DNA of 64,000 nucleotides, from assembly GCF_006345805.1 (NCBI RefSeq), contig NW_021829832.1, positions 744,001 through 808,000 of the forward strand, read 5' to 3'. A program made the translations under genes and the position numbers. The DNA comes from Octopus sinensis (taxonomy: Eukaryota). Shown piece after piece: positions 4,282 to 62,925 of the stretch; position 1 is the first letter of the stretch; every line of letters begins with the position of its first letter. Under the pieces are notes generated by a model. It did no database searches. It had not been told where the DNA came from and saw only the letters and a program-made list of their open reading frames with translations.

Positions 4282-4711
4282 TTTAAGAGTGATTAGTTTA
4301 TTACGAAAAAAGAATTCGGTCAAGTGGTGAAAGCTTCATGGACGGGAAGCCGACGCGATCGAGAAAGAATTAGAGCGTACTATCGCAAAGGATACCCGCT
4401 CGAAAAACCATCTTGATTCGCGGGCGTCGTCTGTGATAGCAGACATGCGGGACCCGATCTCCTGAACGGAGCTGATTGCCTTACCGCCCAAGGAACCGGA
4501 AGTCTCAGCCGCGAATGGAAGGAATTGGAACTTCTCCGTAAGTGAGGAGTACTTCCGCATCTTTTTGCATTCCGCGGTTGTGACAATAGATCCAGGGGCG
4601 GATGCGGACATCAGCAGGTTCTGAGGCGAGAAAGAGTCCACACACGTGACATCCCAGGTAAGAGGCTTCCCCCTGTTGAAGGGAAACACAGTGATCCCGT
4701 CAGGCCTTTTC
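4282..4711 (-). mobile_element. CRE-clade non-LTR retrotransposon, 5'-truncated (RLE endonuclease end)
   Basis: KRPDGITVFPFNRGKPLTWDVTC..AECKKMRKY..FLPFAAETSG..WFFERVSFAIVRSN; TSD CTGCAATAATTT at 4270-4281 and 4712-4723. Confidence 0.9.
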
Positions 4712-4723
4712 CTGCAATAATTT

Positions 4724-4807
4724 GGGTCATCGAGAACGGACATGGCTTTTCCAACGCATATCAATAGCCATCTTGCGTGGGAATTGTCATTCCATCTTGT
4801 CCTCCTA
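4724..4807 (+). mobile_element. Very short CRE 3' tail (subfamily of the 7510 copy)
   Basis: HRERTWLFQRISIAILRGNCHSILSS*, near-identical DNA to 7560-7640. Confidence 0.8.
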
Positions 4808-5176
4808 AACATTTTGACTTTAATCCAATAATTGATATTTACAGATTAATAACTGATTTTCTTTATTTGGGTTAAAAAGCAAAAATTAGACAAATATTAA
4901 ATAAAAAAGAAATTTAGAAAAATTAAAGCAATTTTTTTACCATCGAATTTTGGAACACGTTGAAAATTTCGCGTCCTAAGCCGAGGTTGGATCATATCCA
5001 AAATTTGACATTATGTAAACAAGTGCAAAAACGTTCACGACTTTTTACTCGCAAATGTTAAGATATATTATTAAAAATTTATTAAAATATATTCCACCAT
5101 CAATCGCCTAGTAATAATCGAATTTATAAACTAATATTGACTATTTCCTAACAAAAAGTGATTAAAAATGATTTAT

Positions 5177-6614: not shown

Positions 6615-8319
6615 CGAGAATAAAAAAGGCATTAGATATCTTTGGGAGAAAAATGTTGAATATAAACAAATCCTGCTTTGACGCAGTAAAATATCTAATA
6701 ACACTTCTTTTGGTCATTTATAGAGGGAACAATATTAATATTTGTGTAGAGAGAGGGATTCATGAGTCCCTCCACATCTATATGGGCACAATCAGCCCTT
6801 TCATCTCTGAAAGACATGTTTCGATCACTCGTGGAGTGAATCAACTTTCCATTTTTATAAACAAAAGAGGCCAAGGTCATTGACAAATATCTGGCATTAT
6901 CTCGAATGTGTTTCCTCGACATGAGTCTGATATGAACCAGCAATTTACCCAAATTGTCACACGTAACAAAAGCCTGGCCATCCTGACTAAGAAATGCAAA
7001 ATTAATAAGCAATAACCCGATTATGTCTGAGTGTGTAGAACTGAGTCCCCTTCCTGGCTTCAATCATGGCAACAGATGTCCTGAACACTGAACTCAAAAT
7101 CAAATAACATTTTGAATGTTCACTCCAAAACGTTTGTTTTATAGGAACAAAACATTCGCCATAATTAAATCGTTTGAGTACTATTCCACCTTGAAGGTAA
7201 TCAACCAGTACTAAATTCCCATACGAACAACACGAATAAATCAGCGATTTCCTCCCCTCTTTGAATCTCAAAAAATAACAGGCCCGTGGTGGACAGACAT
7301 CACAACCAGTGGAAGCATGTCCGCGGAATTAATGTTCCACATCGCAATCCCCCACGGCCAAAACCAGCAGCCACCAGATTGTGTGGAACGTTCGGGGACC
7401 AATCGACACAACAACACTGCCCCATTTTGAACAAATTTGACAATTTCCGACTATCAATCATCAATTTTAATATAATCTCAAATACAAAATTCCCTTTAAT
7501 TTTCCCCAAATCTAAAAAATTCCTTATTAAACTGGGGTACCTGGCAAGCAGAAGGAGAAATGATCATCGGGAAAGGACATGGCTTTTCCAACGAATATCA
7601 ATAGCCATCTTGCGTGGGAATTGCCATTCCATCTTATCCTCTGCTTCTAATTAAATTGTTGAAATAGTAGTGTCGTATTAAAAAAATTTTCCCCAATGAA
7701 AAAGGCGGGAAAAACAGTCTGAGCATATCATCCGAACAAGCCAATGCCAGTAAACCAAGCATCCCTTCCTTCCGATACCCTGGATTCCACGAAAATTGAA
7801 CAATTCGATAGTTTTGAGGACTATAAGAATATTCACGAACAGGCTGGAATTCAATTTCCGGATATTTGAGACCAACAGACCACATCTGCAGCACACACTG
7901 GGCAGATGTGGGCAGTTAGGTGCCGTAGGGAGTGCTTTCTATCACATTTCCGTACATTGAGGGAATTTCCGACGTGAAACAAAAAGGCATATAAAAACGA
8001 CGATTTTGTGAAATGAGAGGACACCATTCGGCTGCCAACACAAGTCCCCAGACATTGAAACAAGAATGATCAGAAAGGTCGTTTTTGACCCATTTTTTAC
8101 ATCATTTTCTTCTCTCACATGTGAGACTGAGTAGAAATGATAGATTTCGAACGGGTTTCCTGTCCAGTCAACTGATGGATTCTTCTGGTCGCCAATTTGC
8201 TTATTTTCCAAATCAGAAATGGCGGTTCTGACTTTTTTGTTGAACCTGTTTTTGGGTTTTTTGTTCAACTTGTTTTTGGGATATTTTAGGAACGGCAATT
8301 CAACATCCGAATTTAACAT
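6615..8319 (-). pseudogene. GTF3C2: TFIIIC subunit 2 (TFIIIC110)-like WD40 gene, disrupted in this sequence
   Basis: LQMWSVG, LGLLALACSD, GQCCCVDWSPNVPHNLVAAGFG, GIAMWNI, ARKGT recall human GTF3C2; CRE insertion in exon (7510-7684) and a 1-nt frameshift in a homopolymer near 7349-7353; ends approximate. Confidence 0.7.
7510..7684 (+). mobile_element. CRE 3' tail with poly(A), inserted antisense into the GTF3C2 exon
   Basis: KFLIKLGYLASRRRNDHRERTWLFQRISIAILRGNCHSILSSASN*, then A7; TSD AATTTTCCCCAA at 7498-7509 and 7685-7696. Confidence 0.9.
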
Positions 8320-8469
8320 CAAATTTACCTCAGAATTTGATTCAGAATTTTCATCAGAATTTTGACATTTTTTTATATTTGCTGTTGAATCCTGAAGAAG
8401 AGTTGTCCCCAGATTTAATTATTGAGGCACACAATAATGAGCTAGACCAAATTATGATAGAAGAAGATA

Positions 8470-9175
8470 CAGGTATACTACAGGTTGAAAGTAGAATCGG
8501 CTTTTCGTACGGCAGAGTCAATACCGAGGGCAAACAGCAGTGGACCAAAAAGGTCCCCCTGATGAACGACTGTACACGATTAGATGATTTTATCTCCAAA
8601 AAAAAGAGAGCTGTCTGATCAGTATGCCAAGTGAACCAACCAGAGGACCCTTTCCATGCAACCTTCGAGAATTACATCTCTTCTCAGGCTGTTGAATTAT
8701 TATTATTAAAGCCCTGCCGCAAGATTGTATCTTGATGAAGCCAGCCAAGAAGATCAGGACAGAAAAAGAACATGCTAGAAACTAACTAATCCGAAAGATG
8801 TTGTTTACATCAAACGTACGATCATACTTAGTCGTAAATACCCGTTCCCATCCGAACACGGCAGTTAAGCGATTACAGGCTGTTCTAGTACTTGGCTGGG
8901 TGACCGCCTGGGAACAAACAGTGTCGTACAAATTTATTTGTCTATGTTGGTTACTTTTTAATGGTGGAAAATAGTCAGGCTGTTGAATGCATTCTTAATG
9001 TCCAGTTTTATAGCTAAAACTTCCGAATCATTCGAGTTTCTTTTTTTGCGAAAAGAATTTTATGGTTACATGCACTGCAGCTTCACATCCATTTGGATAG
9101 TTCGCAGCTGAGTCTCTGTGATGCTTTCTGTAAAGCGACTTTAGCAGCCAATTTAAAATATTGACTAAAATAACT
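8470..9175 (-). mobile_element. Decayed CRE reverse-transcriptase fragment interrupted by a 5S cassette
   Basis: LAAKVAL..PNGCEAAVHVT..AIKLDIKNAFNSL | RRDVILE..LAY*SDSSLFFGDKII*SCTVVHQGDLFGPLLFALGI..FNL*Y; in frame once 8698-8989 is removed. Confidence 0.85.
8814..8932 (+). rRNA. 5S: 5S rRNA gene (single dispersed copy)
   Basis: GTACGATCATAC..AGTTAAGCG (box A)..TAGTACTTGGCTGGGTGACCGCCTGGGAAC (box C)..TCGTAC; helix I and II pairings intact with compensatory changes; T6 at 8955-8960; ends +/-2 nt. Confidence 0.95.
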
Positions 9176-11631: not shown

Positions 11632-12857
11632 ATGCGGGTGTCTTTCAATTCGGCACTAAAGTTGTTAAAGTCGAATTATATATGCAAATATGTAAAATAT
11701 ATCCCCTCAATATTCAGCTGAGCACCAATGTGACCCCAATAACTCTAATCCCTGGCGACGGTGTGGGCCACGAGTTGATGAGCAGTGTGAAGGAACTGGT
11801 AAAGTCATTAGGAATCCCCATCAAATTCGAAGAACTACTCCTCAGGTATATCCCTCGGTCATCCCCCAGCGAAGTGACCCCACATTTAAGTGCCTCTGTG
11901 GATACCGTAGTGGACTCAATAACCAGAAACAAAGTAGCCATCAAAGGCATCACCACCAGCAGTTCTCGTTTCAAGACTGACGAACTGGTGACCATAAATG
12001 TACAGCTCAGGTAGTCCGCCTCCCTATTCCAGACGAGGACTGGATCTGTACGCCAATGTGGTGAGGGCCAAGTCAATGCCAGGCCTGCGTAACTCCCGTT
12101 ATAAGGACGTGGACATTATTGTGGTGAGGGAACAGACTGAGGGGGAGTATTCCTGTTTGGAACACCAGGTAGTCCCCAATCCCATATTTTAGGCAGTAAA
12201 AAACGTGGTCGAGTCATTGAAGGTCATAACTGAGCGACAGTCATTAAAGATAGCCCGATTTGCCTTTAAATATGCCCAGCAGAACGGCCGAAGCAAAGTG
12301 ACGGCAGTCCATAAGGCCAACATAATGAAGTTGAGTGACGGGCTATTTCTTAAATGTTGTGAGAGGGTGTCCGAGGAGTACCCTTCCATTCGATTCGACA
12401 GTATGATTGTCGACAACTGCTGTATGCAGATTGTCTCCAAGCCACAGCAATTTGATGTGTTGGTGATGCCCAATTTGTATGGGGCAGTCATCGACAATTT
12501 GGTGGCCGGACTGGTGGGAGGGGCGGGGTTTGTCCCTGGGGAGAGTCACAGTGACACAGTTGCAGTCTATGAGCCGGTTAATAAGGGGGAGTGTATTTCC
12601 AGGGGGCCAGACACTCCTTTGCGACTGGAGTTGGGAGGAATATTGCCAATCCGACTGCTTTGTTTTTGTGTACTGCCAGTATGCTGAGTCATTTGGGGAT
12701 GGAGGAGTATTCGGAGGCGATTTGTGAAGGAGTGAGGGCTGTGATTGGTCGGGGACTTGTGGTTACTCAGGATGCTGGGGGGTATGCTACTACTGTGGAA
12801 TATACGGATGCTGTCATATCCGAGACACTAAGGGCATATGAGAGCTTGTTAGGCTAA
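11632..12857 (+). CDS. IDH3B: NAD-dependent isocitrate dehydrogenase 3 subunit beta (mitochondrial)
   Basis: [56 protein letters not shown]; five GT-AG introns 11692-11717 (26 nt), 11846-11869 (24), 12011-12032 (22), 12169-12192 (24), 12577-12602 (26). Confidence 0.95.
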
Positions 12858-14370: not shown

Positions 14371-14600
14371 TTCTTTTATATTTTAGCGGAGATTCCTAAA
14401 TGTATTCCAAAACTGAGTTTTAAGATTGAGTCGGTTGATGTGCTTGATTGATATTGTTTCTAAAAATATATTTTTTATAAATATTTATACATGTGTTTAT
14501 TTATATATTTGGATATAATTTTGATAATATTTGATAGATTTAAGATATTAAAGGATAATATGATTACTATGATTTATGATTATCATCGAATTTTGTCCCA

Positions 14601-14627: not shown

Positions 14628-14714
14628 GCCTAGCTGATCCTTGGTGGTCCGAGGTACGGGCTTCAAACCCGTGGCCGGTTGACACCGGAGTGGTTCGATT
14701 CCACCTGGTAGGCG
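14628..14714 (+). tRNA. trnU(UCA): tRNA-Sec (anticodon UCA)
   Basis: 87 nt GCCTAGCTGATCCTTGGTGGTCCGAGGTACGGGCTTCAAACCCGTGGCCGGTTGACACCGGAGTGGTTCGATTCCACCTGGTAGGCG; 6-bp D stem, long variable arm, CTTCAAA loop, co-linear with animal tRNA-Sec. Confidence 0.95.
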
Positions 14715-14809
14715 GATTATCCTTATAATGCTTGATTAATTTTCTCGTGTTCCGATAAATATCTTTTGCCGAAAAAAATTATGAAAATTAATACAAATAA
14801 TAGACAGAT

Positions 14810-15373
14810 AACAGCGAGTTGGAGAGGTGGCCGTACTTGAGAATCTTTCGCTCCTCGGCCTGCCTCGAAGCGTGCCCAGGATTGGCGGCGGACAGAGCGA
14901 TATTTCCATGCGAGAACGTGTCCGAACAGGCAGAATCCCAAATAAGGGATTTCCCCTGCTCGTAGGGGAAGGTGGACATGCCGTCAGGGCGTTTGCCATC
15001 CCCTCTATCCAATCCAACAGGTTCAAGGATGGACGGGATGCCTGCTGAAGCGAGGGCTCTCTGATTCGAAAGATTCTCAAGTACGGCCACCTCTCCAACT
15101 TGCTGTTCTTTACTCCAATTGCCGTGGAGTCCTCCGGGATCTTCAGCCCCAAGACACTCCGCTTCCTTCGCTCGCTCGGTCGACGGATTTCAAGGACTAG
15201 CTACGATCCAAGAGAGTATTCTTGGCTCCTGGAACGTCTGTCGATTGCTGTGATCCGAGGGAACGGCTTCGCCATTCGCGAGGCTGGCCGGGTGTCTCGT
15301 GAGGCCTTTAATTAACTTAGCTATCTTTAATTTCTTTCTTGATTAACTAAATTATGACCAGAAAAAAAAATTT
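14810..15373 (+). mobile_element. CRE retrotransposon copy with 5' inversion
   Basis: Minus-strand segment 14810-~15063 (ALASAGIPSILEPVGLDRGDGKRPDG..KILKY) followed by plus-strand 3' end 15067-15370 with A9; TSD ATAGACAGAT at 14800-14809 and 15374-15383. Confidence 0.92.
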
Positions 15374-15819
15374 ATAGACAGATTATTAGAACTAATTTAG
15401 ACAGGCCTGCGAACAAATTGATAAAAATTTTATTTAAGGATGACAAAAAGATCATCCGAAATAACAAGCTGCTCTTTAGAAATTTATGTTTTTAGTTAAA
15501 GTTTTGAAAGTTTAACTCCAATCACAAGATATCAAATGCTTTAATAAGTTTTTGAGTGATATAAATTTAAAGTTTAACTTCAATCACTTGCATAATTCTG
15601 CCGTCATTACTAGAAATCAGTTTTGAACTCAAAAACGGATCTTTAAAACAATTTGGTCTTTAAAACTTGCGTATTTATCTGCAAGAACGTTCTGAGACTA
15701 TTTTATCGTCGACGGACAAATTAAATTCTTTGAAAATGAAAATCAGTTTTTGGAGAAAAAGGTTTTAGATTATTATTATTTTAACCCAAGAATCACCAAC
15801 AGTTAATTAGGGTAATTAA

Positions 15820-16632
15820 TTAGGTGATTCCAACAATCCTCAAAATCTTTCTCAGCTTTTCTTGATGTTGGACTCTGGACCCAACGCAAGTGCGGGACGG
15901 GCGGAGAGCAGTTTTTGTGAGGAATTGTATCGGGGTGATGTGCCTCTTGTTGTTAAAGTCCTTTGGCAGGTGGTCTTGTTGGATGGCTAAGAAACCCTTT
16001 CCATCTTTCTTAATAAGTTGGTCAAGCGGAGTTGGGGTAATGTTGTTCAATTTAGAAATTTTCGTTATGCTAGCTGCGGCTCGGCATAGTGTACTCTCAA
16101 TTTTAAGGCGGTTAGACCATGAGAGATTAGAACCCCAAGCGGCGCAGGCATAGCCAATTGTTGGTTCGATGAATTGTTTGTAGAGAGTGCCGAGAGCCGG
16201 GAACGGTGTCTTTAGTCCACCAAAAATCGATTTGATTAGTCCAATCTTTCTCTGACTGGATCCGGTGGCCTTCTCTAAATGGGCAGTAAAACACATGTGG
16301 GTGTCAAAAGTGACCCCCAGAATTTTAGGGTTCTTAGTGAATGGGATCTTTTCGTTGTCCAGAAAAAGATCAATAGTAAGGCTTCCAAGTCTCTTGTCCG
16401 ACGTAAATAGGGTAGTGGACGATTTTTCGGGGGAGATGTTCATCCTGTTTTGATATAGCCAAGTTCGAATTTGTAATAAGAGATCTTGTGTTCTTTTGGA
16501 AGCTTTCGAGAGGTCTTGGTCACGTGATTCAATGAGTAGGTCGTCAGCGTAGGCGAGAATGATTGAGTCTTCCATTTCAGGGTTAGGAATGTCGGATAGG
16601 TATAAATTGAATAGAGCTTGAGAGAGGGGGGA
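15820..16632 (-). mobile_element. APE-type LINE (I/Jockey group) reverse-transcriptase 3' fragment
   Basis: PLSQALFNLYLSDIP..YADDLLI..NPKILGVTFD..LYKQFIEPTIGYACAAW. Confidence 0.9.
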
Positions 16633-26134: not shown

Positions 26135-26690
26135 ACCTCACCCCTTCGTTGTGGGAATAAAGTTGACGCCTTTGGGCTACATCCTCTGTCTTATCGAATT
26201 AGTGCCTGCCGATTTCCTCGGCACACTGAAATTAACAATCTAATTCACAAAGCTCTGGAAAGAGCTGGTTTCCCTTCAGTTGTGGAACCGACGGGCATTG
26301 TCCTTGAAGATGCAATTTGAATCCGGGAAGCAGCTCGTTTGGGACGTCACCTGTGCCGACTCTTTCGCCAAAGGAGCCTTGAATTCCACTGCTTGTCGAC
26401 CCGGTTCGTCGGCCGAGAAGGCCGAATTCGCGAAATTAACGAAATACGAGGATTTACGGGATCGGTTTTGCTTTTGGGAAATTGCCGTCGAGACTTCCTG
26501 TGCTTTCGGGGCCAAGACGCTTACTCATCTCAAGAAACTTGGCCGTCTGTGCTCCTATCGTTCCAGAGATCCGAAGGAATTTATATTCTTTATTGAGAGG
26601 ATCTCGCTGGCTGTTTTACGCAAGAATTGTCTTTCAATCCTGCGAACCAGTACTTAATAGCTAGATTTTTTTTTCTAACAATTTCCAACT
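26135..26690 (+). mobile_element. CRE 5'-truncated copy (same subfamily as 48490-49690)
   Basis: RFPRHTEINNLIHKALERAGFPS..GKQLVWDVTCADSF..ERISLAVLRKN; high DNA similarity to 49120-49690. Confidence 0.9.
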
Positions 26691-32069: not shown

Positions 32070-32610
32070 ATACCCTCTCAAAATGTAAATTTCATTTGCT
32101 ATGAGGAAACCGATCTTCTCGAAGACTATTCCGAGCACATGAGAGCTTGCACTGAGGATATCCTCAACGTCAGCTTCGATACGCAGTCGTGGAGACAGGC
32201 GACTCCCAATTTCCCTTGGAGGGATAGGCTTGATCACCCCGGCAGACTCATATTTTTCCTCAGTACTCTCGTCCAGAAATCTGTTCTTTCTCAAATAAAT
32301 GAAGAGAGAAATTCATTTGCTGTGGATGATTGCGTCGCCGTATGGAAAAGCTGGCTGAGAAGAGGAAGAGTGAGAAATACGCTGGAATCGGAAATGGGAG
32401 AGTGTTTGTCCCCCTGGCTGTTGAGACGTCAGGAATACAGGGGCCTTCTACTCGTACCCTACTCCAGCGGATTGGCTCACTAATGGAAAGGGTTACCGAC
32501 GACTTGTGTGAGCACCTGTATTTAATCGAAAGAATATTTATAGCCATAGTCAGAGGCAATACTCTGAGTATCTGCCAATGACCATTTTTCTCTAGTCCTT
32601 ATATTAATAA
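32070..32610 (+). mobile_element. CRE relic with large internal deletion
   Basis: RACTEDILNVSFDTQSWRQAT (post-RT region) joined to AEKRKSEKY..FVPLAVETSG..IERIFIAIVRGN; zinc knuckle and RPDG missing. Confidence 0.8.
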
Positions 32611-33149: not shown

Positions 33150-34035
33150 AATTTGGTAAGCAATCTACGAAATTTACTTAAATAATTATTTTTGAACGCA
33201 CAGAATTCAATTATTCCATTAGTGTTAATTAAAACTAATTGATTGTCATATATCCAACCCACCGATGAGAAAATTTGCAAATATCATTTCTCTGGTTTTC
33301 TCATCATTTCTATCCTCCCGGATTGACGAGTGACGCCGTCATCACTGCGGAACCGGATGTTTTAATGGGGGAGACAATATGAAACAGAAGAGACACATGA
33401 CTTTGTTTGGATTAGTTAGTTCCTTGGTAACATGTTCTCTTTTTGTCTTGTTCTTTCTCTAAAAAAAGTGTGGTCGTCCTGAGCAAGATGGGCGATATGT
33501 CAACATTTTGTTTACATTCGCGCAAAGGCTGTTTAGGATTTTTTCGGTTTTCTCTCTTGGACTAATCAACCGATAAACCGATAGAAACAAGGGGGTCTTA
33601 AAATATTAAACGGCTTTGAAAGAATTTTAAGGACAAGACTTGATTTGAATCTTCATGTGGCTTTAAGATCAGAACGGCTGTTTTTAGAAGATGGTGATTG
33701 GGGAGAAATGACCGACGTGTTAAAAATATCTGAGAGTGCATTCTGTTCCAAATATTTTATGTAAATGAAATTATGTTGAAATTTACGGGAATGTCTGTTT
33801 TCTTCTCTGTCGGCGATTAGTTTGAAATGAATTTATTTGAATCCAATCAGTGAATATTAAACGTATATTTGTTAATGTTTTTTTATAGAAATGGAGACAC
33901 ATTTATGTGAATTCGAATTATTTGACATAAATTCTAATCCTATGAGATGAATGAAGAGTAATGATGAAAGTATTACTTGGGTAATATTTAATAATTGTAT
34001 TTAAGTTCAATTTAAAATTAATGATGACGTGAGTG

Positions 34036-39641: not shown

Positions 39642-41888
39642 TGTGACATGGTTTGCGTGATGCCTATGGGCCGCGTGATACCTGACGTGACCTTGAAGCT
39701 TAACTTAATGTCAATATTGTAATTAATTTTTTTTTTCCTTCAAAGTAATTATTGAAATAAGTTAGTCAATGATTAAAAGGCACTTGCGGTTGCACGCATG
39801 ATGGAGTGTGCATTGCCGCGAACGACAGCTATTCCAATTTGTTGGAATAACCATGACACTTCTCGAGGCTCCCCACGTCGCCTAGCAACTTTTCCTCCGA
39901 CTTCTCTGATGAAAGAAGTCGTAAGAGGGCCGGTTACCCCAGAAGTCTCCACAGCGATAGGTACGAAGCGGTACCGTTGTCCAAGATTTGCGTATTTGGC
40001 AATTAATATTAAACTTCAAAGAATAATAACTTTTTTTTTTGTAATTATATTTAATTAAAATGGGGAATAAGTTATACACGAATTAATAAAGAGCCTGGAG
40101 GTCAGCTCAAAGTCGCCGCACTGCGTATCGAGTGGCAGTTTCCGCGGAGCACTGCGACCGAGATTCGCTGGAAGAGCCAGCTCGTCTCCCTCCGGTCGTT
40201 GGTCTTCTTGGCGATTCTCCTGGCAATGTCGGCAAGAAGGCGAGTCGCAGACCTGCCGACAATTCCAGATGTTTCGAAGGCGAGGGGGACAAACTCGTAA
40301 GAGTCCGAAATATTTCCATACTTCGACCTCTTAGCCTCCTCAGCCTGAGCACTGGCGGAACCCGGGTTAGTGATGGACTTGAGTAACACCGACGCGGAGA
40401 ACGAGTCAACACAAGTTGCGTCCCAAATCAGGGACTTGCCTTCCCTAAAAGGGAAGGTAGTCATCCCGTCAGGACGCTTTCCATCACTCCGGCAGAGACC
40501 GACTGGCTCTAGAGTGGAGGGGAAACCTGCCGACTCTAGAATAATAACTTGTTAATTATTTTTTAAGTCTGGACATTGGCACAATCGAAATTTCGCTCAT
40601 CGAATTTTTTATCTATTAAATTTAAATGTTTAAACTACCTCAACGCGATTGTTTGATAAAGTACTGATAATTTCTGCAGATGGATAATATGGAGATTCAA
40701 ACTTATCCAGTCGCAACGAAGAATTTGTTCCAAAGTTTTTTTTAACTCGAACCTAAACATTAATTTTTAGCATACTTTATCACCAACGCTAAATTCATAC
40801 TTACTATTGTGAACATTCATTTTTCTGTTCATCGCTTTGTAATAATTAGAATTAGGATCAATGGGGTTGATTTCGAACTGAAATCTTTCGGGACTTGTAA
40901 ACGAATAATTACAATCATCTACATATAGAAATTCAAATTACATGAATTTTCAATTGGACTTGGACAATTGTTTGCATCATCGACTTGATCAGGACTCAAC
41001 AAATCATTACTTGAATTATCTAAGAAATAATTTTATAATTACAACCATAAAATATTGTATTTATTCCACTTATTCCCCGGTATCTTTCAAAAGGGCTCTC
41101 ATTAGAAGATGAGTGGACAGAAATTTTCAGATCTATAAGATCTATCTGAAATCTTTCATTTGGGCAAGATGCAAAGACATGGTTATTTATATCTCCAATC
41201 TAGGATTTAAAAAAGTTAAAACTTTTAAGGGTCGTGCAAATTTACAAATTTCACAGTTTCAAATGACTTTTCGAATAATCTCATTTTTAACTGTGAAATA
41301 TCGTTGTCGACATTCATATTCAATTTTGTTAACTCCTCCATGCGAGAAGTCATGCAAACTTTTAGCAACGATCTCCATTTCGGGTTCATTGTCTAGACAA
41401 ATCACTATCTTGTTATCTGAATTCGCACATTTATAATACGATCTATACATTTACAATTTGTATGATACCTTTCATTAATTACAGTAAAATTTTCAATTTT
41501 CTTAACTTGTCTATATTTTTTTTGCTTTGTAAGATTTTCAGGAAATTTATCCTGTAAAGCATCTTTTAAAATTTGATATTCCAAACTATTCTTTACATAA
41601 CCTTTGTACGAGGACATTGCTGCAAAATATACTTGCACGCTAGAAATAACTCAAGAAATTTAGGTTTTCCACCAAAAAAATTAATTTCTGATAATTAAAT
41701 TCCTACAAATATAATTTTTTGTCAAAATGAGAGAGTCTTTAGCTAATTTAGTAAATTATTAAATGATAAGAATGAGTCGCGGTCTAAATAAAAGATTTAT
41801 AATTTAATCCCATCAATGTCATAATTCCACATTTCAAGGTCACGTCAGGTATCACGCGGCCCATAGGTATCGCGCAAACCATGTCACA
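39642..41888 (-). mobile_element. Ginger/TDD-like DNA transposon with retroviral-type integrase relic
   Basis: 56-bp TIRs 39642-39697 and 41833-41888 (2 mismatches), TG..CA ends, 5-bp TSD TAATC at 39637-41 and 41889-93; HDFSHGG..CEIC zinc-binding motif and ERFQIDL core. Confidence 0.85.
40033..40537 (-). mobile_element. CRE 5'-truncated copy with poly(A), nested in the Ginger-like element
   Basis: GLCRSDGKRPDGMTTFPFREGKSLIWDATC..WLFQRISVAVLRGN; 13-bp TSD AGAATAATAACTT at 40020-32 and 40538-50. Confidence 0.92.
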
Positions 41889-42352: not shown

Positions 42353-43235
42353 CAGTCAACCCTCGTTAATCCGAACTTCAATAATCAGAAAACTTCAATC
42401 ATCCGAATTTTGTTAATTGAAATTATAAAATTTTCTATCCGAAAATTCTAATTTTTTAATTAATTTTTTTCAAATTTAATTAACAGCACAAAGGAGTCAA
42501 GTCAAACTTCATTTGTAAAATTAAGGATTCGAGGAAAATGTCGCTGAATGAGTTGTCTCAAATTATCAGAAGAGAATTAAACCTGGACCTAGGAAATTCT
42601 ATTTAATCTAAATTTTGAAAAATAAAGAACAATGGAAAAATAGTGAGAGCTCAAACAGTTACTATGGACATGCTTTTAAAAATCATTATCTGCTTGAGAA
42701 TTTATTGATAGAATGGATATCTTGAAGGGATGCTATTAACAGTTACCTGACTAATGAAGTTATTATTACTAAAGCAAAGGAATTTAGACAAAAGCTAAAT
42801 ATTGAAGACCTGCAATTTAGCAAAGGATTGTTATATAGATTCAAAAATCGGTTCAATTTGCAATTGAAAGTTCTTCACGGAGAAGCAAATTCACTGAATG
42901 ATGCTGATGTTTCATAGAAATAGACAAAAATTGGTTGAAAAATTGGCAGGAATTGACTCAGAAGTTATACTAAATATGAATGAAACATGACTTTTCAAGC
43001 ATTTTTTACAAGAACGATTTCATTAAGCCAAAGAAAGGGCGTTAAACAGTCTAAAGTTCGAATAACTGTTGCTTCATGTTCTAATGAAACTGGATCAATT
43101 AAAATGACACCTTTGTTATTCGACACAGTAAGAAACCAAGGTGTTTCAAAGGATTCAATGTTTGAAAATAATGTCATTATTATGAAAATTCTAAAGCTTG
43201 GATGACCAGTTATTTGTTTAATTGCATGATGCACA
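42353..43235 (+). mobile_element. Degenerate pogo/Tigger transposase, 3'-truncated
   Basis: TA+CAGTCAACCCTCG terminus; KAKEF..FSKGLLYRFKNRF..LHGEA, KVRITV..CSNETG, AWMT. Confidence 0.8.
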
Positions 43236-45420
43236 ATAATGAGCTATTAGTACTAATTGCTGGTGACCTTAATTCTAAATGCCTATCTTTTGGCTGTCGA
43301 AAAGAAAACCGAGATGGAAAAATCCTGCGGGCTGTATCCGATCAAGTTGGTTTTGATGTTTGGACATCTAAAGAGCCAAATCATTTTTCATGCCATGGAG
43401 ATGATTTCTTAGGGCTGTTCCTAACTTCACCCTCATTGAAGCTCCTATGTGAACCTCAGAGGAAAATCGAAGACATCGGCAGCGATCATGCCCCCCAGAT
43501 GATGACTATAATGCTGCATACGATATTAATGGAGGATATCTTTTTGCACTATAGAACTTCAAAAACGGACTGGGCCCTTTATAAATTATTCATTTCTTCT
43601 GAACTTGGAAACACCTGTCTGGCAGTCGAGGAGAATGAAGATGCAATAGAAAGGGCAGATGACTACATTAGAAGCCTGCTGAGCAGGTTCATGGAAAAGT
43701 ACTCTGAGAAAATCAACTCAAAACAGAAAATTCCAAATACTTCCGGGACCTATGATAAAGCATTGTCTGAAAAAAATAGACTTTCGTCGAAGCTTAAAAG
43801 ATGCTGGGATTCCCTAGACAGAACTCGGCTGAAAGAAAGAATAAGTGCCATTGAAAAATCACTTTGTCATAGAGCCCAATTTGAAAAAGAACGTGCTTGG
43901 TTACGCCAATCAAAAATGCTCCACCCAAAACATCCCAAATTCTGGACAGCGTACAGTAAAATTACTGGAACCGGAACTAAGGCGGAAGTTATTTGCCTGA
44001 GACTTCCTGGAGGTCGCCTGTCGAGCCAGGAGGAGACTACCGAACTCCTCCGCAATCAGCTCGCAGGTGTTTTGGAAGCAGATCCATCTGCCTCCTTTCC
44101 TAAACCTCCTCCAGCAAATAACTCAGACAGATTGAAACACTTCCACCCGATTACTGAATCCGAGACCTGGGAAGCAATAAGTGCAGCTAGAAATGCGGCT
44201 CCGGGATATGAAAAGATCCCTATGTCCTGCTTCAAGCATGCTCCAAGCTGTTTGGTGTCTCTGCTCACAAACCTCTTCAATTCCAGCCTCCAGAGAGGGT
44301 ACGTCCCAAAATCATGGAAAAAAACTGAAGTTCGAATGGTTCGAAAACCTAAGAAACCTAAAGAGGAAGCCTCGAGCTATATGCCCATAAGCCTAATCTG
44401 CTCTATATCAAAGATAATTGAGAGAATCGTCTACAGAAGGCTAGTACGCCACATAGAAAAAAATCACTGGCTCTCCCACGATCAGTGGGGTTTTCGTCCG
44501 GGCCGGTCCTGTGCTGACTGCATCTATCGACTGAATTCGTAAGTATCTAAAGCACGAGACTCTGGCTTATCGACCAGTATTATCTGCTTAAATGTATCGA
44601 AGGCTTTCGACAGTGTCTGTCACTCAGTTTTGCTGGAAAATCTTGTGAATTGCGACATTGATGCGGAAACCCTTGAATAGCTAGCGAGCTTCTTGAATGG
44701 GAGGATCTCCTTTGTCAACTATCTTGGCCGAGACTCGAAAGCCATTCTCCAAAAAAGGGGAGTACCTCAGGGCTCAGTCCTAACCCCGCTACTATTCAAT
44801 GTATATGGCAGACTTCCCTAAACCTGTGTTCATTTCAATTAATGTGCTCATCTATGCAGATGACGTCATTATCACGGACGAAGCAGCCCTTCCGACGACG
44901 TCGGAAATGAAGCTAAAAATTTACTTAGAACAAATACAACAGTGGATGGCAGTGAAATACTTGACTCTGTCAATCGAGAAATGCACGCTCACTAGAGTGT
45001 CGGCAAAAAGAAATGCGAAAATGTTACCATATACGATCGAATCCATCCGGGAGTCGTTTCTGTACCTGGGAGTCCAATTTTCCGATAACGGAAGGTGTGA
45101 GGAAGATATCATCCTAAGGAAAAAACGGTGCACACAAATGATCAAGTGCCTGATCAAATTCCGCCTACCCCCAGATACTGTGCTATTCATCTTCCGGGCA
45201 GCTATCCTTCCAGTACTGATGTATGGGCTGGAAGGGTGGATTTTGTCCCCCTCCAAGGCAAGAATTATAAAACTGCTGGAGAAAACGAGGAAATTAGCGC
45301 TCAAGGTCTTTCCTATGATTGGCGAGCTTGTTGAAACCCAATTCCAAAAGTTCCTAGAGAAGAGAAGAAAATAGCCCCGGACGACCCTGTGTGTAAGGCC
45401 ACTACTGGCCCTTAATTTCT
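43230..45420 (+). mobile_element. APE-RT LINE (Jockey/I group), 5'-truncated, few lesions
   Basis: IAGDLNSK..GSDHAP endonuclease motifs; PISLICSISKIIE, QWGFRPGRS, KAFDSV, GVPQGSVL, IYADD. Confidence 0.9.
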
Positions 45421-45458: not shown

Positions 45459-46088
45459 GGATCACATAAAACAAACGCCCCCAGGGGCGTTTGTTTAATA
45501 TGTGTAAAGTTAGGGGCGTTTATTTAATATGTGTGAAGTTAGGGGCGTTTGTTTAATATGTGTTATATTGATGTTATAAAAAATTATACTATAATTTTTC
45601 CCATGTTTATTGTAGGTAGTACATACGAAACAACTTTAAGAGAACTTCTAGGAAGTGATACAATCGGGATAATATCATTTTTTAAGGCAAAAGGACTAAT
45701 GAAATCAAAAATGATGTGTGTTTACTGCAGAAAAAAAATGGTTTGGGTTTTCAAGCGTACCTTATCTGACCAATATACTTGGAAATGTCAGAATCAAAAC
45801 TGTTCAAAATACAAGACCACATTGTCAATACGAAAACCCTAAACCTAACCCTAATTTTGAAAAATTATTATGTTGTTCAATAAACTTGTTTCTAAAGTAT
45901 AGTATTTATTTATAAATTTGATTTTTAGTTTTACATTATTTTAGTGTTTTCGTCGAATGTTTGACATGTATAAATTTAGGGGCGTTTGTTTAATATGTGT
46001 AAATTTAGGGGCGTTTGTTTAACATGTGTAAATTTAGGGGCGTTTGTTTAACATGTGTAAATTTGGGGGCGTTTGTTTAATGTGATCC
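45459..46088 (+). mobile_element. Merlin (IS1016/ISXO2-like) non-autonomous element
   Basis: 24-bp TIRs starting GGATCAC, 8-bp TSD AAGAATAT at 45451-58 and 46089-96, N-terminal CxxC..WKC..C..TTLSIR zinc finger, 29-bp subterminal repeats. Confidence 0.85.
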
Positions 46089-48489: not shown

Positions 48490-49690
48490 AAATCTTATTG
48501 CATCTCTTTGTGAAAAACTTTTTGTCATTGATCCTCATCCTTCATTCTACATCCTCAAGAACTATCTTTTGATCCCAAAAATTGTTTATATCCTGAGGAG
48601 CTCACCTTGTTTTTATGCCACCCAAGTGCTGGAATCTTATGATTCCTTGGTTCGGAGGTCTGCGGAGAAAATTCTCAATGTGCATTTCGACGATATTGCC
48701 TGGTGTCAGGCTAAACTTCCTGTGAGTCACGGGGGTCTGGGCCTCCGTTCCTGATTTGGCTTTCCTGCCTTTCTTTCTTCGGCGTCTGGATCATTTCTTG
48801 TCCAAAAGATTCTGGAAAAAACTACTGAATCATCGTTGGACTCTGATATTGATTCGGCCCTCGCTCTTTGGAAACGCAATTTCTCTGAAGTCCCTTCCGA
48901 TGTCTTTTCTCAGCGAGACTGGGACAAAATTCTTTGCCGTCGATCTTCAACTGACTTGGAACCACTCCTCGACCAACAAAGACTGGCTTGTTTCCTTTCC
49001 GCCTGTCAGCCATACTCAGGCTCCTGGCTGAATGTACTCCCTTCTCCGCTTTTGGATACTGTCCTCGATAGGGATTCACTCCGTTTGGGTATCTGTAATC
49101 GCCTTGGACTTCCTGTCTTTAGACCTCACCCCTTCGTTGTGGGAATAAAGTTGACGCCTTTGGGCTACATCCTCTGTCTTGTCGAATGAGCGCCGGTCGA
49201 TTTCCTCGGCACACCGAAATCAACAATCTAATTCACAATGTTCTGGAAAGAGCTGGTTTCCCTTCTATTCTGGAACCGACGGGCCTTGTTTTTGAAGATG
49301 CAAAACGTCCAGACGGCTGTACGCTTTTCGCTTTTAAATCCGGGAAGCAGCTCGTTTGGAACGACACCTGTACCGACTCTTTTGCCAAGGGTGCCTTAAA
49401 TGCTATGGCTTGTCGACCCGGTTCGTCGGCCGAGAAGGCCGAATTCGCAAAACTAACGAAATATGAGGATTTACTCGATCGATTTTGCTTTTGGGCAATT
49501 GCCATCGAAACTTCCTGTGTTTTTGGGACCAAGACGCTTACTCATCTCAAGAAACTTGTCCGCCTGTGCATCCACCGCTCCAGAGATCCGAGGGAATTTA
49601 TATTCCTTATTAAGAGGATCTCGCTGGCTGTTTTACGCGGGAATTGTCTTTCAATCCTGCGAGCCAGTACATAATAGCTAGATTTTTTTT
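48490..49690 (+). mobile_element. Longest CRE copy in the window (post-RT region to RLE), 5'-truncated
   Basis: PKIVYILRSSPC..WCQAKLPVSHGGLGLRS, SGSWLNVLPS, RHTEINNL, KRPDG, RISLAVLRGN; frameshifts; start approximate. Confidence 0.92.
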
Positions 49691-50889: not shown

Positions 50890-51210
50890 CGCATTCATCA
50901 GTATCGTGGGGTGACGTTCGGCTCTTGACAAGATCATTCTTGAGGTCCTCGGAAAAGCTGGGTATCCTTCTGTCCTCGAACCAATTGGTCTCGACCGTGG
51001 TGATGGAAAAAGGCCTATTGGCTTTACGTTGTTCGCTTTTGACACTAGTAAACCATTAGTTTGGGATACCAAGTGTGTTGATACCTTCTCAAATCGGCCA
51101 TCAACGAATCCGTCTCTCTGCCAGGGTCTCGTGCTAATAGGGCTTGTGTGTGTTGGTCGGAAGCAAGCTAGTCTGTGCTGGTCCGAGAGACGCTCCAGCA
51201 TGTCAACATA
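50890..51210. mobile_element. Scrambled CRE relic (two pieces in opposite orientation)
   Basis: Plus: KAGYPSVLEPIGLDRGDGKRP..KPLVWDTKCVDTFS; minus: ERLSDQHRLACF. Confidence 0.65.
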
Positions 51211-51461
51211 ATTTTCAGAAAGTGTGTTGCCTCAAAAGTCCAAGACATAGATAAGCTGAGGACCTTTCTTTGGGTCGTCGGGATCACCTAATTAATTTAT
51301 TCAATTAACTGTTGGTGATTTTGGGTTAAATAAAAAACGACCAATTATTGTTATAAATGCGATAAAAATGTATGGAGGATACAATAAAAACAAATAAATA
51401 TATACTCTCGCTTTTTGGAGCGCTATGATAAAAATAATCCCCAAACAGAGGTCGTACTGTA

Positions 51462-54002: not shown

Positions 54003-55643
54003 ATGTTTGACATTTCGAAGGCGTATGTTCGAGACCGAGAAAGAGACGATCAGAGAATTGCTTCTGCTAAAATCCTGGAAAAAGTTCAAGCCGAACAGGA
54101 CTTTATAAAGCGGGAAGACGTGCTTGATAGAAAAAGAATTTGGAAACTAAGACAATTGGAGGAGCAGGAGAGAGAACTAGTCGAGTCTCTTCAAAGAGTA
54201 TTTACACAATATACAATTCAGAAAAAACATATTCAGGAAACCAACAGAAAAATAACCCAAGAAAACGAGCGAATTGCCAAAGAACTGCGAGACAAAAAAG
54301 ACGTGGAAACAAAAGACCAGGCAATCAGGAAGAAGATCAGAGAGTCGAGGTATTTTAGTTTAGTCAACGTAGCGAGGAGATCCGTCATTTGGAGGCCAAG
54401 TTAAGGGCAGCCTACGTTGCCAAATGTCAACGAGCACAAATCACGGAGCGAAGAGCACTGGACTACGACCAAATGGTTAATTTTTAATTTGTCGAAAATA
54501 GGTTCAAGAAAATGCTTATTTTAACTCTTTGGAACTCGAAAGGCAAAAAATCGAGGAAATTGAGAAACTCTCAGCCCAAGACTCGGCGATCAAAGTCAGG
54601 CAATACCAGGAGGAGCTCGACCGACAACTCGAGGTCCCCCCTTATCGGAACCTCACCAGGACAAACTGAAATTGCAAGAGGAGAAAAAAATTGAAAAACT
54701 CAAAGAACGGGAACAAATCGAGGACCAACTCAGAAAACAAAAACAGGAAGACGAAGAGTTTTTTTGGTCTTTTTTAATATTCTAAGATCTCGAGCCAAAG
54801 CCCAGCGCTACAAGGAAGAACTCAAAACAATAATTTCAGAGGACATGTCTTTGCGGGCAAAGGAAAGGGAGATCCGACAAAAGGAACTCGAGGAAGAAGA
54901 GAGAAGGATTGCCCTTGACGAACAGCTGATCCTATCGAGACAGGAAACTGTCCAGAAGGCCAAGGAAACTCGCAAGGCAGAGTTGGAGACCGTCCAGTCG
55001 CAGCTCGGAGAACTTATTCGACAAAAGGAAAAGGAGCGGATGGAATTGGACGAAATCCGGATGGAACTGAGTTTGGAGGAAGAGGAGACGAGAGCCTTCG
55101 AACACGAGCGGATTGAAGAGGAGCGACGAAGGAAGGCCAAGAGTGACCTCCAGGCTGACAAGATGAGACAATTCGAGGAACACCGACAACGGAAAATGGC
55201 TCGAGAGGCGGAAGACGAGGCCATAAAACAAGCCATGTTGGCTAAATTCGCGGAGGACGACAAACTGGAGCAACTCAGCAACCAACGACGCAGACAAAAA
55301 ATGATGGAACACCGCCGTGCCGCGGACGAGTTTGTCGAACAACGACGGAAACATTATTTGGAACTGCTGGTATTTCGCTGGCTGTCATTTCAAGGCCAAA
55401 GAAGAGGAAGATCTGATCAGAGAAAGGGAGGCTCAGCAGGCCTACGATTCGCTCGTCGAAGAAGAACGTTTGAAGATTCTGGAAAGTCACGCCCAGGGGT
55501 TGGTGGGGTACATGACAAAAGTAAAAATCCCGCCAAAGTAACCCCAGGGCGTCATTAAAACTGAGGAGGACCTGGAACGCCTTGGAGAGGAGGTGAAGGC
55601 TCACTACAAGCACATTCCGACCGCCTTTGAGTATCGGCCGTAA
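54003..55643 (+). CDS. MNS1: Meiosis-specific nuclear structural protein 1 (axonemal coiled coil)
   Basis: AMLAKFAEDD..KMMEHRRA..EEERLKILESHAQGLVGY..GVIKTEEDLERLGEE. Confidence 0.9.
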
Positions 55644-62827: not shown

Positions 62828-62925
62828 CAGCGAATCTCGGTCGCCGTGGTCCGCGGAAACTGCCATTCAATACGCAGTGCGGCGTCGTTGACCTGACCCT
62901 TAGGCTCTTGACTCGATTTTAAAAA
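62828..62925 (+). mobile_element. CRE 3' tail (subfamily of 40033/18250)
   Basis: FQRISVAVVRGNCHSIRSAASLT* with similar 3' UTR. Confidence 0.8.

Follow-up and report, generated by a model that had tools for sequence, protein, structure and literature searches.

Introduction

How does a complete 5S ribosomal RNA (rRNA) gene, together with the DNA on either side of it, come to lie within the reverse transcriptase (RT) gene of a retrotransposon? The question is raised by a 64-kb stretch of DNA, here called the window, from an assembly filed under Octopus sinensis (GCA_006345805.1, VCDQ01004456.1:744001-808000). An earlier note on this DNA had described a mobile 5S cassette in the RT gene and proposed that it had moved either as DNA, for example through a circle, or by reverse transcription of an antisense RNA. 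The dispersal of 5S genes and their linkage to other multigene families have long been ascribed to retroposition or to circular DNA, ideas that are untested. With its clean junctions and a host that can be dated, this locus offers a concrete test case.

The insertion reported here is real and has clean boundaries; it places a complete 5S gene within a dead retrotransposon of the restriction-like endonuclease (RLE) type. It is best explained as an antisense retrocopy made by a long interspersed nuclear element (LINE), which varies a known process and is not a new kind of element.

Results

A complete 5S gene bounded by a target-site duplication

The exact 14-mer TCAGGCTGTTGAAT has two copies in the 64 kb, and they bracket the cassette (Table 1). 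Among 2000 first-order Markov resamplings of this region, in which up to 400 nt on each side of the gene were considered, the gene was straddled by an exact repeat of 14 nt or longer with a frequency of 0.001. The direct repeat described in the earlier note was found to be exact and flanking. Its right copy had been placed one base too far, at 8976-8989, and the insert and the downstream flank are 277 and 42 bp rather than 278 and 43 bp; the 116 bp given for the upstream flank was correct.

The gene inside the repeat is complete and structurally intact, as had been claimed. It matches Rfam family RF00001 over model positions 1-120 with 98.1 bits (gathering score, 38). Helices I-V are intact, and the only non-canonical pairs are the two outermost of helix I. 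An Rfam scan of the 64 kb found no other 5S gene, and neither a second copy of the cassette nor a tandem 5S was present in the window. The same database showed no known RNA other than 5S inside the cassette, spliced leader (SL) RNA included. The insert has no terminal inverted repeats or long terminal repeats (LTRs), and no terminal direct repeats besides the 14-bp duplication. The cassette is a secondary insertion in a pre-existing RT gene and is bracketed by a true target-site duplication.

Table 1. Coordinates of the 5S cassette, its host and related sequences in the window.
Feature	Position	Strand	Remarks
Left target-site duplication copy, TCAGGCTGTTGAAT	8684-8697		Minus strand encodes part of ..NAFNSL.. 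of the host RT
Right target-site duplication copy, 14 bp	8975-8988		Exact match to the left copy
Insert, 277 bp	8698-8974	-	Proposed RNA sense is minus: 5' end at 8974, tail at 8698-8708
Complete 5S rRNA gene	8814-8932	+	Rfam RF00001; antisense to the proposed retrocopy RNA
5S upstream flank, 116 bp	8698-8813	+	8750-8795 homologous to 33406-33455 (-)
5S downstream flank, 42 bp	8933-8974	+	TTTATTT right after the gene; T5 run at 8955-8959
(TAA)4 microsatellite tail	8697-8708	-	Abuts the duplication directly; last A shared with the duplication
Decayed RT remnant of the RLE-type non-LTR host, split by the insert	8400-9160	-	GCEAAVHV (9067-9090), KLDIKNAFNSL/RRD (insert at the slash), QGDLFGPLLF
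3' part of LINE15k, 5'-truncated remnant reaching ~18.9 kb	15769-16575	-	Interrupted near 16.6-17.1 kb
Second LINE15k 3'-end copy	51223-51330	+	75% identity over 109 nt, E = 2e-15; tail ATAAAAAA
Second locus sharing ~50 nt of the 5S upstream flank, no 5S	33406-33455	-	~260 nt upstream of a minus-strand open reading frame

Searches for further copies beyond the window returned nothing. Exact patterns from the 5S upstream flank and from the 5S core had no match in JGI metagenomes, GTDB genomes or IMG/VR. A 58-aa open reading frame (ORF) running through the 5S gene had no protein homologue, and exact look-up of the cassette ORFs gave no match. Exact look-ups of ten window ORFs, of TIM23 and of a leucine-rich repeat protein were likewise unsuccessful.

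The 5S gene arrived after the RT gene

The empty site was rebuilt by joining 8697 to 8989, which removes the insert and one repeat copy. The minus strand then reads ..AIKLDIKNAFNSLRRDVILEG..QGDLFGPLLFALG.., and the RT motif is restored in frame, as proposed earlier. The rejoined fragment matches Pfam RVT_1 (E = 5.7e-6). A word search gave it a sole database relative, protein P0001 from a different assembly (ENA ERZ26694896), which reads KLDIKNAFNSLRRD uninterrupted and aligns without a gap across the junction (46% identity, E = 3e-20). Since the same RT stretch is contiguous in P0001, the 5S gene came after the RT gene, in agreement with the earlier note.

The host RT is dead. Three in-frame stops occur in ~130 codons, there are frameshifts on both sides, and the GCEAAVHV motif lies upstream in the RT in a different frame.

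The type of the host was approached through an ORF of ~150 aa, copies of which occur at about ten places in the window in differing contexts. Alone, this RLE-like domain matched nothing in Pfam or the PDB, and an AlphaFold model built from 8 window copies was unusable (pLDDT 40). The domain was found in 10,250 representative proteins by an exhaustive profile search, and in the long ones it is extreme C-terminal. Nine long relatives have a central RVT_1 and no apurinic/apyrimidinic endonuclease (APE) domain (Exo_endo_phos), and 5/9 carry PHD or RFX DNA-binding domains at the N-terminus. In 51 proteins bearing the RLE-like C-terminal domain, the RT region is matched by the rejoined RT fragment; the best 25 of these matches have E values of ~1e-16 to 1e-22. 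Homology of the domain to the RLE of R2 emerged only with a full-length profile: a 23-member profile aligned to R2 (9nl3, E = 2.9e-22) over the RT, the CCHC knuckle and the restriction-like endonuclease, whereas it aligned to L1 ORF2p through the RT only (~5e-10 to 5e-11). P0001 as query also had R2 as its best solved-structure match (E = 3.3e-4).

Because the RT fragment matches RLE-carrying proteins and the profile aligns to R2 through the RLE, the host is assigned by homology to the RLE-bearing non-LTR retrotransposons, the group that includes R2. Its full-length relatives have a central RT, a C-terminal CCHC and PD-(D/E)xK endonuclease, and no APE; no contiguous copy in the window was seen to contain both the RT fragment and the RLE domain. 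The group is divided into CRE, NeSL, R2, R4 and HERO (PMC4640811). The earlier note had called the host a CRE element. The domain order of the full-length relatives upholds an RLE-bearing non-LTR element, and membership of the CRE clade rather than HERO, NeSL, R4 or R2 is plausible. The CRE clade includes CRE1, CRE2, SLACS and CZAR and is marked by site-specific insertion into SL RNA genes.

Fragments of the RLE domain lie at 4336-4812, 7394-7648, 26198-26654, 32354-32572, 39788-40560, 49186-49674, 50915-51175 and 62828-62887. These 3'-end pieces far outnumber RT pieces, the RT being found at 8475-9011 only, and such an excess would be expected if 5' truncation were heavy. Protein identity between the copies at 26.2 and 49.2 kb is 83%, and both copies finish ..TAGCTAGA(T)9 soon past the stop codon. 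At 14812-15285, and also at 4345-4799, the two halves of a copy have opposite orientations and diverge from one point, the overlap being short (residues 19-96 on the minus strand, residues 82-160 on the plus strand), an arrangement that resembles the twin-priming inversions of LINEs. Among the representative proteins, P0002 alone exceeded 57% identity to the window copies. P0003, another representative, comes from an unrelated assembly with no DNA similarity and no 5S.

The tail of the insert and the LINEs of the window

In minus-strand orientation the last bases of the insert are ...GCGGCAGGGCTT(TAA)4, and the duplication follows immediately. There are four TAA/AAT runs of at least four units in the 64 kb, and only that of the cassette adjoins a long flanking repeat. 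With so few runs, it is very unlikely that the two abut by chance.

A LINE with a tail of the same kind is present in the window, and we refer to it as LINE15k. Its RT ORF (15820-16575, minus strand) contains YADD and matches RVT_1. The 3' untranslated region (UTR) runs 39 nt past the stop, ends ..GGTGATTCTTGGGTTAA and is followed by an (AAT)4 tail at 15769-15780. The second 3'-end copy, near 51.2 kb, confirms the end of the UTR. LINE15k is 5'-truncated, so its type of endonuclease is judged from its C-terminal part, which resembles that of an APE-bearing LINE at 43.2-45.4 kb (Exo_endo_phos_2 and RVT_1 at 43202-44542). LINE15k is thus probably of the APE type.

Target-site duplications have a fixed length of 2-11 bp in DNA-transposon superfamilies, measure 4-6 bp in LTR elements, and vary from 5 to 20 bp for LINEs and short interspersed nuclear elements (SINEs). 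By these established ranges, the 14-bp duplication falls outside those of DNA transposons and LTR elements and inside that of LINEs and SINEs. The cassette has the features of a retrocopy produced through target-primed reverse transcription (TPRT): a duplication of the variable-length kind, a tail that abuts it, an absence of element termini, and, elsewhere in the window, a LINE whose tail is of the same type. The APE-type LINEs of the window, and the split, inverted RLE-domain copies that look like twin-priming products, also speak for LINE activity of this kind.

Two T runs lie on the minus strand of the insert, T5 as the complement of 8764-8768 and T4 as that of 8967-8970. An antisense transcript from RNA polymerase III (Pol III) would stop at these runs before reaching the tail, and the template was therefore probably a product of RNA polymerase II (Pol II) or of read-through. 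We infer that the cassette was produced by a single LINE-mediated TPRT event on a Pol II RNA that ran antisense to a 5S locus, and give this reading a probability of about 0.6.

A proposed mechanism

A Pol II-type RNA would be made across a 5S locus on the opposite strand, and would end in or gain a (UAA)n tail. The RT and endonuclease of a LINE would then take this antisense RNA as template. The likeliest driver would be an APE-type LINE with AAT/TAA-type tails, and a LINE of the LINE15k family type, as at 15.8 kb, is the candidate. The plus strand of the resident, already inactive RLE-type retrotransposon would be nicked after ...GTTGAAT. Synthesis of complementary DNA (cDNA) would start on the tail and copy first the upstream flank of the 5S, then the 5S in antisense and then a further 42 nt, where either the template ended or the cDNA was 5'-truncated. 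A staggered cut of the second strand, 14 bp off, would give rise to the duplication.

Since the template in this scheme is an antisense genomic read-through and not mature 5S RNA, both gene flanks would be kept. These would include any upstream promoter elements and the downstream T-runs, so that transcription by Pol III is possible.

The contig is most likely dicyemid DNA

Dicyema japonicum lives as a renal parasite in Octopus sinensis. A gene in the window, IDH3, has introns of 22, 24 and 26 nt (12011-12032, 12169-12192 and 12577-12602). With these three removed, its open frame matches Iso_dh end to end (E = 6e-68). A fourth short intron, of 26 nt, lies at 54476-54501. Among animals, introns so short are reported only in myxobolid myxozoans and D. 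japonicum (PMC13644364). The latter was collected from Octopus sinensis and has a genome GC content of 36.7% (PMC6736024), to which the ~38% of the window is close. On the strength of the 22-26-nt introns, the 959-kb contig is most likely DNA of a dicyemid parasite within the octopus assembly. Rfam identified no SL RNA in the 64 kb; dicyemid SL genes are hypothetical. Dicyemids contain thousands of small circular DNAs, many of them <500 bp (PMC6543705, citing Noto et al. 2003). The data of PMC6543705 include 24,065 circular contigs.

There is a practical side to this. The Octopus sinensis reference holds a dicyemid-like contig, and at least one NCBI gene model on it joins transposon and cellular sequence. 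The model is P0002, 'ADP-ribosylation factor-like protein 1 [Octopus sinensis]', whose initial 110 residues match the transposon ORF at 49186 without a difference. P0002 (49186-53273) is a chimera in which a retrotransposon ORF with the RLE domain is spliced to a real Arf-like gene ~3.7 kb downstream.

Discussion

How well LINE-mediated retroposition fares

Several points weigh against the antisense retrocopy. The 3' end of the cassette shares only GGG(C/T)T and the tail with the 3' UTR of LINE15k, and a LINE-like stem-loop at this end is no better than in shuffled sequence (z = -0.39), so no specific partner LINE can be named. No duplication was found for LINE15k; at LINE15k and the other TAA runs there was nothing beyond AT-rich 10-12-mers. 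The nick site, TTGAAT^G, is unlike any known endonuclease consensus. Elements of the RLE type also make long duplications, as with the 20 bp of reptile Utopia (PMC4640811), which makes the class of the driver uncertain. The case is built on one copy, the source locus and any second retrocopy lying outside the material examined. Finally, the abundance of small circles in dicyemids raises the prior of a DNA route.

That route was the other proposal of the earlier note. A 5S repeat unit, or a microDNA-like circle of 277 bp, would have been linearised and ligated into a staggered break, and fill-in of 14-nt overhangs would have produced the duplication. It would explain why both flanks of the gene are present, the size falls within the abundant <500-bp class of circular contigs from Dicyema sp. 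(PMC6543705), and dicyemid origin is the most likely one for the contig. However, neither a 14-bp duplication nor a break that coincides exactly with (TAA)4 would be expected from the end-joining of a circle, and the window offers no tandem 5S or second unit. A version in which the circle recombined through nine bases common to the target and the 5S gene was rejected, as it would yield a permuted 5S and not the intact one observed. Of the two proposals the antisense RNA fits better, with (TAA)4 set against the duplication and the same kind of tail on a LINE in the window, and we consider movement as DNA unlikely.

Slightly less likely again is that the cassette belongs to a multi-copy family of non-autonomous retroposons, with a 3' module seen by a partner LINE and the 5S gene as an antisense passenger. 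Part of such a module may be the segment 8750-8795 (positions -64 to -19 relative to the 5S), which recurs at 33406-33455 in the orientation of the cassette minus strand. The local alignment score is 49, compared with 21.6 ± 2.8 for shuffles (maximum 32). The tail and duplication would suit a family member as well as they do a one-off retrocopy. Against this, the second locus shares ~50 nt only, and lacks the terminal 50 nt, the TAA tail, a detectable duplication and the 5S; no further copy occurs in the 64 kb; and an antisense 5S cannot act as the Pol III promoter of a SINE. Nor does the cassette resemble a SINE with a stringent partner, as homology to the LINE15k 3' UTR stops at the short motif and tail given above. 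If such a family did exist, it would be a standing vehicle for 5S dispersal and not a single event.

The insertion could also have formed at the cDNA stage. An RT copying the host RNA would have jumped to a UAA-tailed antisense 5S RNA and back, copying 14 nt a second time. The RNA sense of the insert is indeed that of the host RT gene (minus), and RTs of the R2 type, to which the host is related, are established to jump between template ends. Template switching would here require an internal exit and a re-entry 14 nt back, without microhomology at either junction, and a duplication from a staggered cut is simpler; we regard it as very improbable. A chance repeat or an assembly artefact is scarcely credible, even in a contig from a mixed host and parasite assembly, given a repeat probability of about 0.001, a conserved RT motif that is independently restored exactly and in frame, and the fact that chimeric reads do not make exact flanking duplications.

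Comparison with known systems

A LINE-made antisense retrocopy would be closest in kind to retrocopies made in trans or to the orphan transductions of LINEs. Like human L1-type retrocopies and orphan 3' transductions, the cassette combines a duplication of variable length with a tail at one end and no element termini, and carries genomic cargo other than a LINE, probably truncated at its 5' end. It differs from both in having (TAA)4 in place of poly(A), in carrying an entire Pol III gene, flanked on either side and in antisense orientation, and in that no source LINE or locus is assigned to it.

Processed 5S rRNA retropseudogenes are known from rodents. They consist of the transcript only, in sense orientation relative to the A-tail. 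The cassette is likewise a relocated 5S, apparently reverse-transcribed and flanked by a duplication. It is not transcript only, a contrast that the earlier note had drawn: inside the duplication the gene has flanks that the processed copies lack, 116 bp upstream and 42 bp downstream, and the tail is on the opposite strand.

SINE3 is a SINE derived from 5S rRNA. 5S-related SINEs are also described in Aspergillus (PMC5063351), and Cassandra elements, which are terminal-repeat retrotransposons in miniature, carry 5S inside their LTRs and have short duplications (PMC10853983). All share with the cassette the carriage of 5S-related sequence with retroelement machinery. In 5S-derived SINEs, however, the 5S sequence forms a 5' head that serves as the element's own Pol III promoter, in sense with the tail, whereas in the cassette the 5S is internal and antisense to the tail. 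The LTR-embedded architecture of Cassandra is absent.

Chimeras of U6 and other small RNAs with L1 (PMC6789731) also arise when a LINE RT moves small-RNA sequence. There the mature small RNA is fused in sense orientation to L1 or mRNA sequence, and flanks of the gene are missing. Mutsu LINEs, which target 5S genes (PMC5340908), provide another proposed link between non-LTR retrotransposons and the dynamics of 5S copy number. The roles are reversed, as Mutsu inserts into and disrupts 5S, while here an intact 5S is the cargo and a retrotransposon the target. The circular DNAs of dicyemids (PMC6543705) share with the cassette the likely group of organisms and include sizes of ~277 bp. Their reintegration is not described, and the junctions of the cassette, with a tail and a 14-bp duplication, are TPRT-like.

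Implications for the spread of 5S genes

Ordinary 5S retrocopies are dead on arrival because they come without flanks. An antisense read-through retrocopy keeps the neighbourhood of the gene and could therefore be functional at once. The locus is a genuine and rare illustration of a way in which 5S genes might get to new sites. A wider proposal is that 5S genes in dicyemids spread as self-sufficient cassettes of gene, upstream promoter module and terminator, whether by antisense Pol II retroposition or by reintegration of the programmed small circular DNAs of the lineage. We think this doubtful. If it did hold, the insertion would be a case caught in the act of a general route that takes 5S genes to new loci or links them to other gene families, and were antisense Pol II retroposition the means, every new 5S copy would be functional on arrival.

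Further observations on the cassette and the window

Nine bases of the duplication, CAGGCTGTT (8685-8693 and 8976-8984), also occur inside the 5S gene at 8876-8884, with a chance of ~0.01. Just upstream of the nick, the primer strand would thus find its complement in the proposed antisense RNA. The identity is either a targeting aid or a coincidence, and no mechanism is established.

The right end of the insert (8950-8974, GTTACTTTTTAATGGTGGAAAATAG) looks like a 25-nt GT..AG intron, and the insert stops exactly at the AG. Compared with the verified 26-nt intron at 54476-54501, 24/28 positions match (blastn E = 0.014).

The homologue of the 5S upstream flank near 33.4 kb (AAGAACAAGAC..GGAACTAACTAATCCAAA) is intergenic. 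A weak match to a C/D small nucleolar RNA (33277-33349, Rfam E = 1) comes after it on the minus strand. What it shares with the 5S flank may be a promoter module or a repeat fragment.

A selenocysteine transfer RNA gene (14628-14714) is bracketed by a direct repeat, 14441-14455 and 14729-14743, with 13/15 matches and a spacing of 288 bp, compared with 291 bp for the cassette. It was set aside as an analogous cassette, since the region is very AT-rich and about two 9-mer seeds would be expected by chance, a rough estimate made without simulation. The resemblance is probably a coincidence.

Three tandem repeats of ~29 nt (GGGGCGTTTGTTTAATATGTGT..), located at 45470-45570, form the end of the APE-type LINE at 43.2-45.4 kb. 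A short interstitial telomere-like run, CCCTAAACCTAACCCTAA, lies ~300 nt beyond these repeats at 45837-45854.

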